Counted from the first letter of the stretch, positions 1 to 8,900 are shown. The stretch: DNA of 64,000 nucleotides from Macrostomum hystrix (GCA_950097015.1 CATNEN010000012.1:2728001-2792000); one strand, 5' to 3'. A program made the numbers and translations. Notes: generated by a model not told the origin, from the letters alone.

Positions 1-2
1 TG

Positions 3-818
3 GACCAGAGGATCGCCAGACAAGAGAAGCTGCTCCGCCTGAGAACGCTTCAGCGCCAAACAGCGGAGATTGAAGCCGAGCTTGGAAAGGACGGCCAGCG
101 CAGACAGAGTGGTAAGTCGACTAGCCCGATGCTGCTTAACCAAACCCTCAGTGCCCACGAGCCGGAGCAGCATCTGCCAGTGCCAGACTGGGAACTCCCC
201 GGCAGCTACACTAAGCCAGCTGCCACCTCGAGGCCTCTGCTGGTGAGAGACTTCATCGATCGTGACTTCGAGGAGCCTGCGCCCCAATTAGCGAAGACTA
301 GAGCCCGAACTGAGAACATCACGGCCGGTCAGTGGGTTGCAGGCAGCGGCCGCATCCTGCTGAGACTGCTTGACGACGGTGCCCTAGTCACAATGAGAAA
401 CGGCACCATGGATTTGAGTGAGCTGAAAGCCTATGTGCGGTACTGCGTACAGTTCGGCGAGTTCATGCATCAGGGCTTCAGCCAGGCCGCCCTCAACGAC
501 TACGACGAAGACTTCAGGATCCTGCAGCACCAGACCAGCGGCAACTGGGAGCGGGAGTCGTTGCAGCTGCTGTCCAAGCACATTCTGGCACCTAAACCCA
601 ATCCTGCTGGCAGTTCGACCTATTCGCGGCCTGGCTTCAAGTTCAGCAAAATGAGAAACCAGACAAGCGGCTTGGTCGGCCCAACCGACGCTGAAGGTCG
701 GGAGCTGTGCGTCAAATTCAACCGAAACAGCTGCCACAGACGCGACTGCAAGTTCAGACACGCGTGCTCTGCCTGCTACGCGGCGCACCCGCGCCAGCTC
801 TGCACGTCAAAAAACTAG
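3..818 (+). CDS. Gag-like ORF1 (5'-partial)
   Basis: The frame is open from base 3 (DQRIARQEKLLRLRTLQRQTAEIEAELG, coiled-coil-like), so the true start is outside the window. The C-terminal CVKFNRNSCHRRDCKFRHACSACYAAHPRQLC is C-x7-C-x4-C-x3-H plus C-x2-C-x3-H-x4-C zinc fingers, typical of DIRS/Ngaro Gag. Confidence 0.88.
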   Translation, partial: DQRIARQEKLLRLRTLQRQTAEIEAELGKDGQRRQSGKSTSPMLLNQTLSAHEPEQHLPVPDWELPGSYTKPAATSRPLLVRDFIDRDFEEPAPQLAKTRARTENITAGQWVAGSGRILLRLLDDGALVTMRNGTMDLSELKAYVRYCVQFGEFMHQGFSQAALNDYDEDFRILQHQTSGNWERESLQLLSKHILAPKPNPAGSSTYSRPGFKFSKMRNQTSGLVGPTDAEGRELCVKFNRNSCHRRDCKFRHACSACYAAHPRQLCTSKN

Positions 819-3292
819 ATTGCGGCCGGCCGGGGGACTTGACCGACGGCCCAGCTGCACCGGCCGATTCTGACAATGTCGATCACCCGCTCCCCCCTGG
901 CCGGCCTCAAGCTAAGCCCATCGAGTCCGTTGCCTTCTCTTCTGACCTTATCACCGCCGCCTGGGATGCCGAGCTGCTCGGCGATCCCGATCGTGACTTC
1001 CTGCTGAACGGTGTCCGCAACGGCTTCCGCCTCACCTGCCCCAGCGCCCCTGACAATCAGCCTAATAGCACTTTCTCTCAGAACTACTTCTCCGCTGACA
1101 GTAATCGGCTACTGGTCGAGCAGCAGGTGCGGGAAGAAGTGGCCAACGGCCGTTACGTGAAAGTTAGCAACAAGCCGGACGTCATCAGCGCCCTTGGTGC
1201 CATCCCGAAAGGAAACAACAAGATCCGGCTGATCCACGACTGCTCGCAACCTCCGGACCTCTCGCTGAACAGCCGTTTCTCCTCTGACTACCAGATCAAG
1301 TTTGAGACCGTCAGCCAGTTCACTGCCAAGCTGCAGCCAGGTTGGTTCATGGCGAAGGTCGACTTGGCCAATGCTTACCGCAGTGTCGGAATCAGTCCCC
1401 ACGACTTCCGCTACACTGGTCTACAGTGGAAGTTCAGCGATCAACCGAGCCCGACGTACCTGTGCGACACGCGCCTGCCATTCGGCGCGGCAGCTTCAGT
1501 GGAAGTCTTCCACCGCCTCAGCCAGTCCATCAAGCGCATGATGCAGCGACGCGGCTTCAGCAATATCGGGAGTTACCTCGATGACTTTGCCGTGGCGGCA
1601 GAAACTGAGATCGCCTGCCAGCAAGCTCTGGACACTCTACTTCATCTGCTGCGGCGTCTAGGCTTCTCCATCAACTGGAGCAAAGTAGCTCTGCCGTGCA
1701 CTAGGCTGGTGTACCTGGGCGTCATGATTGACACCAACAGCGGCCTGCTAGAGCTCCCAAAGGACAAGCTCGAGGTCACGAAAGCGCAGCTGCAATCCGC
1801 ACTCTCGCACAAGCGCATCACCAAGCGCCAGCTCCAATCTCTCTGTGGCCGCATCAACTGGGTTTGCCAGGTCGTCCATATCGGGAGGTGTTTCCTGAGG
1901 CCGCTCCTGCTGGAACTCAATAAGTTAAAGCAGCACTGCCACAAACTGCGCATGCACAACGATCTCCGCGAGACCATCCTCTGGTGGGTGGCCTGCCTGG
2001 CCAAGACCCCCAGCTGCCGCATCTGGAGGACCGCCGGGCCAGCCTGGGCAATCGAGTCGGACGCATCCAATTGGGGAGGCTGCGGCATCATCCGCGGCCC
2101 AGGCGTCACTAACTGGCTCATCATCGACTGGCAACGCGATAGTCCGGAGCTCGAAACTCTGCACATCAATTTTAAGGAGAGCCTCGCGCCCGTGTTCACG
2201 GCTCTGCACTTTCAACAAAAGCTGCAACCAGGAAGCAACCTGGTGATCTACTCGGACAGCACGGCCGCTGTCGGCGCCATCAACAAGGGCTCCTCGCCGA
2301 ACCCGATTGTCAACACAGCCCTGCAGCAGCTCGCGCTTCTCGCCGCTCACCGCGATCTCGTTATCCAAGCCTTCCACGTGCCTGGGACGTTCCAGATCTT
2401 TGCGGACAGCGGCAGTCGCGCAGATGACACCAGCGAGCTGGCAAATTTTCTGCTCCGGCTCTACGGCACAGTGGACATTGAAACTGACAACCTTCATGAG
2501 CACACCCTTTCGTCCGCCGCCCGCCAATTCCTTTCTTTGCAGATCGCTCGCCTACGGTCCCGGGTTCGCACCTCAGCCGCCGCTACCACGAGCTCTGCAG
2601 CCTGGCCTTCGCAGGCACGACAGCGCGCTCCTACCGCTGCCAGATTGCCTCCTGGCAACGCTTCTGTAAGCGAACGCGCATTGACAGCACCAGACCGTCA
2701 GCACAGCAGGTCGCGCACTACGTCATCGTGCTGGCCGACCGCCTCACATCGCATGCCAGCATTGGCGCATACCTTAACGCCGCCGACCTGTACTGCAAGC
2801 TGCAGACTGGCCGCGGCCTCCCAAGCGACCCTCGCATCGACCTGCTCCTCCGCGGCGTGCGACGCAAGCTGGCCAGGCCACCCGCGCGCAAGGCTCCAAT
2901 CAAGCCAAACCACCTGCTCAAAATGCGGGGAGTACTGCAGCTGCATATTCCGGAGGACGCAGCCTTCTGGGCGGCTGTCCTGGTCGGATTCTGGGGCCTG
3001 CTGCGCCGCGCAAACCTGTGCTGCCCGACCCCAATGCCGCCACCGGGAGAGGCCATCATCGTTGAAGACCTACGGCTGGGCTCGGACCTGGCAATCCTGC
3101 ATGTCCGCAAGTCCAAGACCAATCAGTTCCGTGAGCGAGTGCACCGCGTGGTCCTGCCACGCCTTCGACGCGAGGCGCAGCACCCGCTCTGTCCGGTGGC
3201 AGCGCTGCGACACCACCTGCACGCCAACCAGCCCGTCCCTGCTTCAGCCCATCTCTTCGCCTTCCGCCATTGCGGTGGTCTCGTGCCAATGA
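707..3292 (+). CDS. Pol ORF2: reverse transcriptase + RNase H (no ATG near its 5' end; probably reached by -1 frameshift)
   Basis: RT motifs KIRLIHDCS, MAKVDLANAYR, LPFGAAAS and YLDD (1574). RNase H motifs IESDASNWG, LHINFKES, IYSDSTAAVGAINKG and HVPGTFQIFADSGSR. No stops or frameshifts. Confidence 0.95.
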   Translation: MRQIQPKQLPQTRLQVQTRVLCLLRGAPAPALHVKKLDCGRPGDLTDGPAAPADSDNVDHPLPPGRPQAKPIESVAFSSDLITAAWDAELLGDPDRDFLLNGVRNGFRLTCPSAPDNQPNSTFSQNYFSADSNRLLVEQQVREEVANGRYVKVSNKPDVISALGAIPKGNNKIRLIHDCSQPPDLSLNSRFSSDYQIKFETVSQFTAKLQPGWFMAKVDLANAYRSVGISPHDFRYTGLQWKFSDQPSPTYLCDTRLPFGAAASVEVFHRLSQSIKRMMQRRGFSNIGSYLDDFAVAAETEIACQQALDTLLHLLRRLGFSINWSKVALPCTRLVYLGVMIDTNSGLLELPKDKLEVTKAQLQSALSHKRITKRQLQSLCGRINWVCQVVHIGRCFLRPLLLELNKLKQHCHKLRMHNDLRETILWWVACLAKTPSCRIWRTAGPAWAIESDASNWGGCGIIRGPGVTNWLIIDWQRDSPELETLHINFKESLAPVFTALHFQQKLQPGSNLVIYSDSTAAVGAINKGSSPNPIVNTALQQLALLAAHRDLVIQAFHVPGTFQIFADSGSRADDTSELANFLLRLYGTVDIETDNLHEHTLSSAARQFLSLQIARLRSRVRTSAAATTSSAAWPSQARQRAPTAARLPPGNASVSERALTAPDRQHSRSRTTSSCWPTASHRMPALAHTLTPPTCTASCRLAAASQATLASTCSSAACDASWPGHPRARLQSSQTTCSKCGEYCSCIFRRTQPSGRLSWSDSGACCAAQTCAARPQCRHRERPSSLKTYGWARTWQSCMSASPRPISSVSECTAWSCHAFDARRSTRSVRWQRCDTTCTPTSPSLLQPISSPSAIAVVSCQ

Positions 3293-3537
3293 CCGCCACC
3301 CGGTTCTGCCGCCTGTTTCGCCGCGCAGTCAACCTCGCCGGCCTGGGAGGACTATCGCTCTCACCGCACAGCCTCCGTCGCGGTGGTGCCTCCCTAGCCT
3401 TTCGGGAAGGCATCCCGCTGCCCGTCGTCAAGGCGCTGGGAGACTGGCGGAGTTCGGCGGTGGAGGCGTACCTTGGGTTGGAGTCGGGCCTCGACCTGCA
3501 ACTGGCTGCTGCTCAAAAACTATCAGCGTGCGTTTGA
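2500..3537 (+). CDS. Tyrosine recombinase ORF3
   Basis: The frame is open from 2500 and includes a SAM-like N-terminal domain (LAFAGTTARSYRCQIASWQRFC) upstream of the ORF-track start. Catalytic residues are intact: R (GLLRRANL), K (RKSKTNQ), HxxR (PHSLRRGGA), W (LGDWRS) and Y (AVEAYL). Confidence 0.95.
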   Translation, partial: AHPFVRRPPIPFFADRSPTVPGSHLSRRYHELCSLAFAGTTARSYRCQIASWQRFCKRTRIDSTRPSAQQVAHYVIVLADRLTSHASIGAYLNAADLYCKLQTGRGLPSDPRIDLLLRGVRRKLARPPARKAPIKPNHLLKMRGVLQLHIPEDAAFWAAVLVGFWGLLRRANLCCPTPMPPPGEAIIVEDLRLGSDLAILHVRKSKTNQFRERVHRVVLPRLRREAQHPLCPVAALRHHLHANQPVPASAHLFAFRHCGGLVPMTATRFCRLFRRAVNLAGLGGLSLSPHSLRRGGASLAFREGIPLPVVKALGDWRSSAVEAYLGLESGLDLQLAAAQKLSACV

Positions 3538-3802
3538 CCCTTGATCTGTCGCTCAAGCATTCTTTGTGACCTCTTTCTTTTGTACTCGCTGTGGACCAAG
3601 TGCCGGCGGCTTCTGTCTTCTGTATTTTTTTGCTTCACGTTTAGTTGTTGTGCTGCGCTCGCTGGTCTCGCTTGTAACTTCTTTACGCCTTCAACCATTT
3701 TGTGTTTTATGTTTTAGCTCTGTTTTAAGTGCGTACCGGCGTCACCCTATTTTGCATTTTATGTTGCGTGCCTCCCCCCTTCCTCTTCCTTTTTTTTGGG
3801 TT

Positions 3803-4239
3803 TGGGCCATAGACGGTGCCCTTCCCTCGTTCGCTCTCTGCTGTGTCGCATCTGCTGTCTCTGTCTGCCTTCGTGCCTGGGAGTGTGGTGTTTAGTGTCC
3901 AATCGGCGCTCGCTGATTGGGTGTAAACACCCACCCCAGGCACCCACCCCAGGCACCCACCCCTCCGCTTTTAGCTGGGTTGTATTTCAGCCGGCACCCC
4001 CGTGCTGCCCAGCCTTGTCTCTTCGCGCTGCGTGGTGTGAAATTTTTTTCTTTTTCCTTGCTTCCTTTTTTCTTTCTTGCTTTTGCCTTTTTGTGTGCAT
4101 TTTGAATACTTCCTTTGAAATAATTTATTTGCAAATATATCGTATGTGGGCCATAGACGGTGCCCTTCCCTCGTTCGCTCTCTGCTGTGTCGCATCTGCT
4201 GTCTCTGTCTGCCTTCGTGCCTGGGAGTGTGGTGTTTAG
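3803..4239 (+). repeat. Split direct repeats B1 (3803-3895), putative A2 (from 3896) and B2 (4147-4239)
   Basis: Two identical 93-bp copies, TGGGCCATAGACGG...GGTGTTTAG, with 251 bp between them. AT-rich host DNA follows 4239. Confidence 0.9.
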
Positions 4240-5943: not shown

Positions 5944-8900
5944 TGCCTGCCTGCCTGTCTGTCTGTCTGTCTGTCTGCCTGCCTGCCTGCCTGTCTGCCT
6001 GTCTGTCTGTCTGTCTGTCGGTCATAGTGTCTGTCTGTCTGTCAGACTGTCTATCTGTGTCCGTGTCTGTATGTTATCCAGTCTATCTGTCTGTATTGTG
6101 AAATATTGAGTGCCCGGTTGTGAAGTCTCGATTCTTATTGTTAGATTTATTGCTTTCAATTTTTTAAAGCTTCTTGAATGATAACCCCCGGGATTATGAC
6201 TTGCTTCTTATTCTTGTGATCAGAGAGAAGCATCAACGACAGGACGGCAGAGAGAGAGAGAGGCGGACAGGGCAAGAAAGTGCAAGCCAGATTAAGACAG
6301 ATTTGAGCTTACGAGATTAACCGGAGGCCAATGCGTCCTCGTACCCTCTCCTCCTCATTCAGCCGCTGTCTTAACTCTCTCCCCGTCTCGTCTCCCCATC
6401 GATCTAACACAGCAGAAAGCATTCAGTGACTCCCCTCCCCGCCAAGCCAGAGCAGATATTTCCCATTATTGATTGATATCGAGGGAGCAATTTTCTCAAC
6501 TTGCTTGCTCTCTCTCTTTCTTCCCCACTCTCTCTCTCTCTGATGCATTTCTACAATATCCACATCTATCTGCACGGTTGGCATCAAAACTAGACGCTTT
6601 GAAAGGATGGTTATGAAATCGAAATATTCCTATCGATAATATTTTATACCCAAAAGTACACAGCTTTATTATTTTTAACAAAAATTAGTTTTCTAATTTA
6701 GCTCGTATGACTAAAGTTGATTATGTTTCTGTTTCAGGCACACGGCTCCGGGACAGAATTCTGCGGAGGAGGTGGTGAGTGTAATAAGTTTTGCACTCTG
6801 CCTGCTTCAACATCCGTACGTGCCTAGATTCTGAACACCCTAGATTAAAAAATCCCTAGATTCCCAAAATCCCTGTCTTCCAAAATCCCTGTCTTCCAAG
6901 ATCCCTGGATTCCCACAATCCCTGTCTTCCAAAATCCCTGTCTTCAAAAATCCCTGTCTTCCAAAATCCCTGTCTTCCAAGATCCCTGTCTTCCAAAATC
7001 CCTGTCTTCCAAAATCCCTGTCTTCCAAAATCCCTGTCTTCCAAAATCCCTGTCTTCCAAGATCTTAGATCCAAGATCCAAGATCTTCTTAAATCCCTAA
7101 ATTCCTTAAATCCCTAGATTCCTTAAATCCCTAGATTCCTTAAATCCCTAGATTCCTTAAATCCCTAGATTCCTTAAATCCCTAGATTCCTTAAATCCCT
7201 AGATTTCAAAGCTCCTAGATTCCGAAAATCTTTCGATTTCAAAGTCAACAATATTTCAGGAAGTCTTAATATTCCCTGAAGTGTCCAGATTCCCTGAAGT
7301 ATCCAGATTCCCTGAAGTCTCCAGATTCCCTGAAGTGTCCAGATTCCCTGAAGTGTCCAGATTCCCTGAAGTGTCCAGATTCCCTGAAGTGTCCAGATTC
7401 CCTGAAGTGTCCAGATTCCCTGAAGTGTCCAGATTCCCTGAAGTGTCCTCATTCCCTGAAGTGTCCTCATTCCCTGAAGTGTACTCATTCCCTGAAGTGT
7501 CCTCATTCCCTGAAGTGTCCTCATTCCCTGAAGTGTCCTCATTCCCTGAAGTGTACTCATTCCCTGAAGTGTCCTCATTCCCTGAAGTGTCCTCATTCCC
7601 TGAAGTGTCCTCATTCCCTGAAGTGTACTCATTACCTGAAGTGTACTCATTACCTGAAGTGTACTCATTCCCTGAAGTGTACTCATTCCCTGAAGTGTCC
7701 TCATTCTCTGAAGTTTACTCATTCCCTGAAGTGTACTCATTCCCTGAAGTGTACTCATTCCCTGAAGTATCCAGATTCCCTGAAGTGTCCTCATTCCCTG
7801 AAGTGTCCTGATTCCCTGAAGTGTACTCATTCCCTGAAGTGTCCAGATTCCCTGAAGTGTCCTCATTCCCTGAAGTGTACTCATTCCCTGAAGTGTACTC
7901 ATTCCCTGAAGTGTACTCATTCCCTGAAGTGTACTCATTCCCTGAAGTGTCCTCATTCCCTAAAGTTTACTCATTCCCTGAAGTGTACTCATTCCCTGAA
8001 GTGTACTCATTCCCTGAAGTATCCAGATTCCCTGAAGTGTCCAGATTCCCTGAAGTGTCCTCATTCCCTGAAGTGTCCAGATTCCCTGAAGTGTCCAGAT
8101 TCCCTGAAGTGTCCAGATTCCCTGAAGTGTCCAGATTCCCTGAAGTGTCCAGATTCCCTGAAGTGTCCTCATTCCCTGAAGTGTACTCATTCCCTGAAGT
8201 GTACTCATTCCCTGAAGTGTACTCATTCCCTGAAGTTTACTCATTCCCTGAAGTGTACTCATTCCCTGAAGTGTCCTCATTCCCTGAAGTGTACTCATTC
8301 CCTGAAGTGTCCTCATTCCCTGAAGTGTCCTCATTCCCTGAAGTGTACTCATTCCCTGAAGTGTCCTCATTCCCTGAAGTTTACTCATTCCCTGAAGTGT
8401 ACTCATTCCCTGAAGTGTACTCATTCCCTGAAGTGTCCTCATTCCCTGAAGTGTACTCATTCCCTGAAGTGTCCTCATTCCCTGAAGTTTACTCATTCCC
8501 TGAAGTGTCCTCATTCCCTGAAGTGTACTCATTCCCTGATGTGTCCTCATTCCCTGAAGTGTACTCATTCCCTGAAGTGTCCTCATTCCCTGAAGTGTAC
8601 TCATTCCCTGAAGTGTACTCATTCCCTGAAGTGTACTCATTCCCTGAAGCGTCCTGATTCCCTGAAGTGTCCTCATTCCCTGAAGTGTCCTGATTTCCTG
8701 AAGTGTCCAGATTCCCTGAAGTGTACACATTCCCTGAAGTGTCCTGATTCCCTGAAGTGTCCAGATTCCCTGAAGTGTCTTGATTCCCTGAAGTGTCCAG
8801 ATTCCCTGAAGTGTCCTGATTCCCTGAAGTGTCCAGATTCCCTGCAGTTTCAAGATCCCAAAATGCCATTTATTTCCGTCATCTTCCTCAAGGATATTGA

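Follow-up and report, generated by a model that had tools for sequence, protein, structure and literature searches.

A probable −1 frameshift signal of canonical type at the gag-pol junction of a Ngaro-type retrotransposon of Macrostomum hystrix

How does a retrotransposon make Pol if its pol frame has no start codon of its own? The question is raised by a 64,000-nt stretch of Macrostomum hystrix DNA (GCA_950097015.1, CATNEN010000012.1:2728001-2792000; hereafter the window), whose start falls inside a young Ngaro-type tyrosine-recombinase (YR) retrotransposon of about 4.7 kb. Coordinates are given in window numbering, and negative numbers denote positions before the window start. Our analysis indicated that the gag-pol signal of this element is an ordinary, canonical −1 frameshift signal, which is well supported. 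Gag-Pol is very probably made by tandem −1 tRNA slippage on a heptamer of the form X_XXA_AAC, with Gag as the major and Gag-Pol as the minor product.

The reading frames and the junction are as follows.

1-818, plus strand: 3′ part of the gag open reading frame (ORF)
809-815, plus strand: A_AAA_AAC, a slippery heptamer in X_XXY_YYZ register with the gag zero frame and the proposed site of tandem −1 slippage
816-818, plus strand: gag stop codon TAG, directly adjoining the heptamer
695-3292, plus strand: pol frame, −1 relative to gag, with RVT_1 at about 1205-1730 and then the RNase H region
2500-3537, plus strand: tyrosine recombinase frame (PF00589), −1 relative to pol

The heptamer at the end of gag and its conservation

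The gag frame reads TCA AAA AAC TAG at 807-818. The original prediction had described an in-phase A_AAA_AAC adjoining the stop codon, with pol in the −1 frame and no ATG near the 5′ end of pol, and all of this can be read directly from the sequence. The heptamer makes up the last two sense codons of gag. It is the only in-phase X_XXY_YYZ heptamer (Y = A or T) in gag 1-818. From composition alone, A_AAA_AAC is expected about 7e-5 times per site. Two in-phase heptamers were found in the roughly 820 codons of pol, both away from the junctions. Gag starts at an ATG 258 nt ahead of the window (L017:5742) and is 358 aa long, with an N-terminal SAP domain (PF02037, E = 1.1e-6, exceeding the curated cut-off) and a C-terminal CCCH-type knuckle. 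The pol frame opens at 695, after a TGA at 692-694, has its first GTG at 707 and stays open across the heptamer. It carries a reverse transcriptase (RT) domain (RVT_1, E = 1.9e-14) with YLDD at 1574. Because its first ATG, at 1349, falls within the RVT_1 match, pol is untranslatable on its own.

In the proposed mechanism, most ribosomes on the full-length RNA would terminate at the TAG at 816-818 and release Gag. A minority would slip back by 1 nt while AAA and AAC of 809-815 are occupied by the P- and A-site tRNAs. The slipped tRNAs would pair anew with AAA AAA and translation would go on in the −1 frame, yielding a Gag-Pol (RT/RNase H) fusion that reads ...SKKLDCGRPG.... The anatomy, phase and conservation of the site are direct observations; the slippage, its efficiency and any part that a downstream stem may play are inferred.

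The genome (220 Mb, 42 contigs) was searched for copies and relatives of the element, with gag and pol pieces searched separately. The DNA search returned at least 13 copies that are 97-100% identical over 600-1100. The heptamer is unchanged in 12 of the 13, and the thirteenth has one extra A. In this thirteenth copy, L007, which is the same as L021 (G000:C7:8654398-8658798, at about 1209 of the locus), the run reads A7C and gag and pol are fused into one frame of 1256 aa. L061 (G000:C1:10096000-10100500, minus strand, at about 2443), which belongs to a different Ngaro lineage, likewise has A7C and fused gag-pol frames. Slippage of a polymerase or of RT on the A run is the probable source of the extra A in L021 and L061, and these A7 copies are a hard-wired version of the frameshift. 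A Logan contig from a public run of unspecified library type (L072) is 98% identical, is colinear with 637-3631 without gaps, and keeps the heptamer.

Conservation was then followed into much more distant relatives. A protein search of the genome with the RT and RNase H region revealed many Ngaro families whose identity to the query is only about 40-47%, and in the tree these families stand on long separate branches of 0.6-1.0 changes per site. We examined 15 lineages, and 14 lineage representatives entered a heptamer-anchored alignment. The loci L048 (coral), L049 (scallop), L052 and L055 have a degenerate or ambiguous junction and were uninformative. In nine deep lineages of the genome (the window family; L030/56/58; L031/33; L036/44; L045; L035/37; L059; L062; L063/66), gag ends NCA AAA AAC plus a stop codon and pol is at −1. 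Outside this genome, gag ends CCA AAA AAC TAG in the hemichordate element L050 and GAA AAA AAC TAG in L073 (GCA_040793965.1), which is filed under a bacterial metagenome-assembled genome. Three further outside lineages (L051, L053 and L054) have G_GGA_AAC at the homologous place, and there the codon before GGA ends in G. The stop codon adjoins G_GGA_AAC in L051 and L053 and comes four codons later in L054. Altogether, 14 of the 15 lineages have the stop directly after the heptamer, and each of the three stop codons occurs among them. The original prediction had proposed conservation across Ngaro families as a check on the heptamer, and the outcome was favourable: A_AAA_AAC is kept in nine lineages of the genome and two outside it, and G_GGA_AAC takes its place in three more.

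The anchored flanks are unalignable, with a pairwise identity of 0.27-0.31, which is about random. Per site, the heptamer holds 1.75 bits of information and the flanks 0.25-0.36. The residue encoded by the preceding codon is variable (Ser, Thr, Ala, Pro, Glu or Gln), whereas its wobble base always fits, being A before AAA and G before GGA. The heptamer is therefore conserved among the diverged relatives (15 lineages) beyond coding need. The shifted-frame signature K-K-L or G-K-L was also found in 11 of the 40 Pol ORFs from the database with sufficient upstream extent. Since A_AAA_AAC or G_GGA_AAC is kept in so many very distant relatives, an ordinary −1 frameshift for Pol is indicated. The wobble match and the conserved phase fit tandem tRNA slippage, and they argue against both transcriptional slippage and a simple conservation of amino acids. 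As judged from the aligned sequences, the module that is conserved begins with a C, which is followed by X_XXA_AAC, X being A or G, and by a stop codon immediately after it.

Two side observations were made on these lineages. Twelve of the 14 representatives have a C just ahead of the heptamer (position 808 in the window element), the codon being NCA or NCG, and this C may reflect an E-site or context effect. L073 and L055 (GCA_023146315.1) are complete animal-type Ngaro elements on contigs that carry the names of bacterial metagenome-assembled genomes; these contigs are probably host DNA binned with a symbiont.

Downstream structure and the adjacent stop codon

The following pairing elements lie downstream of the heptamer.

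823-829, plus strand: 5′ arm of the candidate stem, 7 nt past the heptamer (spacer 816-822), within a CCGG-type repeat with several pairing registers
860-866, plus strand: 3′ arm of the candidate stem, the perfect complement of 823-829
894-905, plus strand: alternative long-range 3′ partner of 825-836, a 12-bp pairing that dominates the 90-nt ensemble with pair probabilities of 0.5-0.96

The original prediction had Gag-Pol produced by frameshifting with the help of this stem. The −1 shift on A_AAA_AAC is strongly supported by the conservation and the wobble covariation, but the stem fared differently. Its arms are indeed complementary and start 7 nt downstream, and perfect stems of at least 7 bp at such spacing occur at only about 2% of element positions. 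As a stimulator, however, the stem is only plausible, given the competing pairings, a fold no better than that of shuffled sequences, a lack of covariation and its absence in several lineages. In a 57-nt context, 823-829/860-866 pairs with a probability of 0.3-0.7 and lies within 1 kcal/mol of the optimum, whereas in a 90-nt context this probability falls to about 0 and 825-836 pairs with 894-905 instead. The CCGG-type repeat of the arms recurs at 898-907. Simple enumeration gave no H-type pseudoknot (stems of at least 5 bp, short middle loop), and an Rfam scan of 700-1000 gave only a chance match, far below threshold.

Among the relatives, strong hairpins at suitable spacing were found in L031, L035, L045, L059 and L062. 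Perfect stems of at least 7 bp at a spacer of 3-10 were present in three of about 10 lineages, as against about 3% expected per lineage. Downstream structures are thus enriched, yet they are not a conserved part of the signal. In the window family, the shift may be made more efficient by GC-rich structure that begins 7-9 nt further on.

Several points weigh against frameshifting at this junction or against any part played by the stem. The folding energy of the region is no better than that of dinucleotide shuffles (z = −0.45, −1.13 and −0.9 to −1.4). Covariation in the stem was not detected, the arms being invariant among the young copies and the next relatives unalignable. L030, L036/44, L063 and L050 have essentially no downstream structure despite the same heptamer. 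The lineage L040/42/43/46 encodes a SAP-containing Gag and Pol as one continuous ORF without a heptamer (e.g. G000:C38:23303777-23308138), and control of the Gag:Pol ratio by recoding is thus dispensable for some Ngaro elements. Two copies that are about 86% identical (L014 and L015) read AAAAAGC; these are decayed, since a large RT block has been lost and stop codons are present. Finally, the case for frameshifting is built on DNA sequence, from which the slippage product itself is deduced.

Another reading of the 3′ side is that the conserved element of the Ngaro clade is the abutting stop codon; the stimulus for the shift could then come from slow termination or from a factor acting in trans, not from a stem or a pseudoknot. 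This reading derives from the adjacency of the stop in 14 of 15 lineages, the interchange of stop codons and the several lineages without foldable downstream sequence, some of them C-rich. We regard it as conceivable but rather doubtful. In L036, L044 and L065, the stop codon is followed by 60-90 nt that begin AU-rich, turn extremely C-rich and have next to no potential to fold. C-rich protein-binding stimulators occur in some RNA viruses, and the C-rich tracts of these three elements can be likened to them.

Alternative routes to Pol and the YR frame

Tandem slippage is not the only way in which Pol could be reached. It might have a spliced mRNA of its own or be started internally, with the heptamer playing no part. 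A strong donor-like GTAAGT is present in gag at 112-117, AG sites in phase with the pol frame exist (e.g. before 912), and the YR frame, having neither an ATG nor a heptamer, seems to need splicing itself. But the candidate acceptors for pol are weak beside the tract before 2543, which is of textbook quality, and the first pol ATG lies within the RT domain, which argues against an internal start. The Logan contig, whose library type is unspecified, runs through 637-3631 without a gap. This route would also give no reason for the conservation of heptamer, phase and adjoining stop codon across unalignable lineages. We therefore consider this route improbable.

Even less likely is transcriptional or RT slippage on the A6 run, by which one added A would bring gag and pol into frame without any ribosomal event. 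An extra A would have the same effect on the frame, and the A7C run with a fused ORF in copies of two lineages (L007/L021 and L061) indicates that the run does slip on an evolutionary scale. Six A, however, is short for efficient slippage, and three related lineages have the non-homopolymeric G_GGA_AAC at the same place. Judged from the DNA, what is kept is not a homopolymer alone in any codon phase: the codon phase and the 3′ C are fixed and the wobble base covaries with the P-site codon, which are the requirements of tRNA re-pairing.

That the motif is kept solely for a C-terminal Lys-Asn of Gag, with the pol overlap incidental, is hardly credible. K-N does close Gag in 12 of the 15 lineages that were examined, but Lys is always encoded by AAA and never by AAG, Asn always by AAC and never by AAT, the silent third base of the variable preceding codon is without exception A ahead of AAA and G ahead of GGA, and three lineages have Gly instead of Lys.

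The YR frame overlaps the pol tail beyond about 2500 and has no ATG near its 5′ end. A second canonical frameshift was considered for it and rejected, as no in-phase slippery heptamer was found in the pol/YR overlap at 2500-3292. A pyrimidine tract followed by CAG, of textbook quality, precedes the YR frame at 2523-2542. The donor-like GTRAGT at 112-117 is in codon phase 1, and the same was observed in the gag of L030, L033, L062, L045 and L051. This recurring GTRAGT sits about 120-133 codons past the gag ATG in three deep lineages. Together with the acceptor tract of YR, it would fit a gag-to-YR splice, such as the original prediction assumed for a Gag′-YR product. A word-based search for Gag homologues gave none at E <= 1e-5, which is a weak test given the low complexity of Gag and the word-limited method.

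Element identity and relation to known systems

The element combines RT/RNase H with a tyrosine recombinase, and Pfam detected no protease, DDE integrase or methyltransferase in it. RVT_1 and Phage_integrase were its only enzymatic Pfam matches. RNase H was not called by Pfam in the window copy; homologues of Pol carry PF00078 and PF17917, the latter being the RNase H call. The best named protein matches are from Macrostomum lignano, and relatives of Pol were found in many animals. The split direct repeats occur in the order A1-internal-B1-A2-B2, as expected of a Ngaro element.

−432 to −267, before the window: repeat A1, 98% identical to A2
3803-4239, plus strand: block of 3′ split direct repeats, made up of B1, A2 and B2
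3803-3895 and 4147-4239, plus strand: repeats B1 and B2, 100% identical to each other
3884-4048, plus strand: repeat A2, the pair of A1 (98%)

The G+C content is 59% in the element as against 46% in the window. Downstream of the element, a tandem-repeat array occupies 6850-8860, with many self-matches of 83-93% identity at offsets in 18-nt steps.

A_AAA_AAC as well as G_GGA_AAC are among the shiftiest heptamers for eukaryotic ribosomes (PMC5009743). At gag-pro sites, A_AAA_AAC is used by mouse mammary tumour virus (MMTV), human T-cell leukaemia virus (HTLV), bovine leukaemia virus (BLV) and intracisternal A particles (IAP), and G_GGA_AAC by simian retrovirus 1 (SRV-1), Mason-Pfizer monkey virus (MPMV) and human endogenous retrovirus K (HERV-K) (PMC3835772). 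The window element resembles the gag-pro sites of MMTV, HTLV-1/2, BLV and IAP in that gag ends with the identical, identically phased heptamer, that Gag is predicted to be fused to an enzyme, and that GC-rich sequence able to pair follows after about 7 nt of spacer (PMC3835772). Unlike in those viruses, its downstream ORF encodes RT/RNase H and belongs to a tyrosine-recombinase retrotransposon that lacks both protease and DDE integrase, and no compact H-type pseudoknot was found in it. The Ngaro stop codon moreover abuts the heptamer in nearly all lineages, several of which lack a predicted 3′ structure. The G_GGA_AAC of the gag-pro sites of SRV-1, MPMV, jaagsiekte sheep retrovirus (JSRV) and HERV-K10 is identical to that of the three outside Ngaro lineages, at the homologous place, whereas no counterpart of SRV-1's defined 12-bp pseudoknot could be recognised in the Ngaro lineages.

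Compared with the described Ngaro and DIRS-order elements (zebrafish, Xenopus, fungi and Cafeteria), the window element has the same order of gag, RT/RNase H and YR and the same split repeats A1...B1-A2-B2. Overlapping ORFs have been reported for YR retrotransposons (PMC9210276, PMC3783388, PMC8547959). In the open literature that we searched, the ORFs of Ngaro and DIRS elements are described only as overlapping or frameshifted and are never tied to a slippery heptamer or ribosomal frameshifting; Goodwin and Poulter 2004 lay outside this scope, and an earlier mention is possible.

The finding leaves general concepts unchanged. It gives the Ngaro-type YR retrotransposons an explicit conserved recoding signal where the searched literature notes overlapping ORFs only, and it enables correct annotation of Gag-Pol in flatworms, hemichordates and other animals. 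The lineages that share the same heptamer, with or without downstream structure, form a natural series on what else sets the efficiency of frameshifting.

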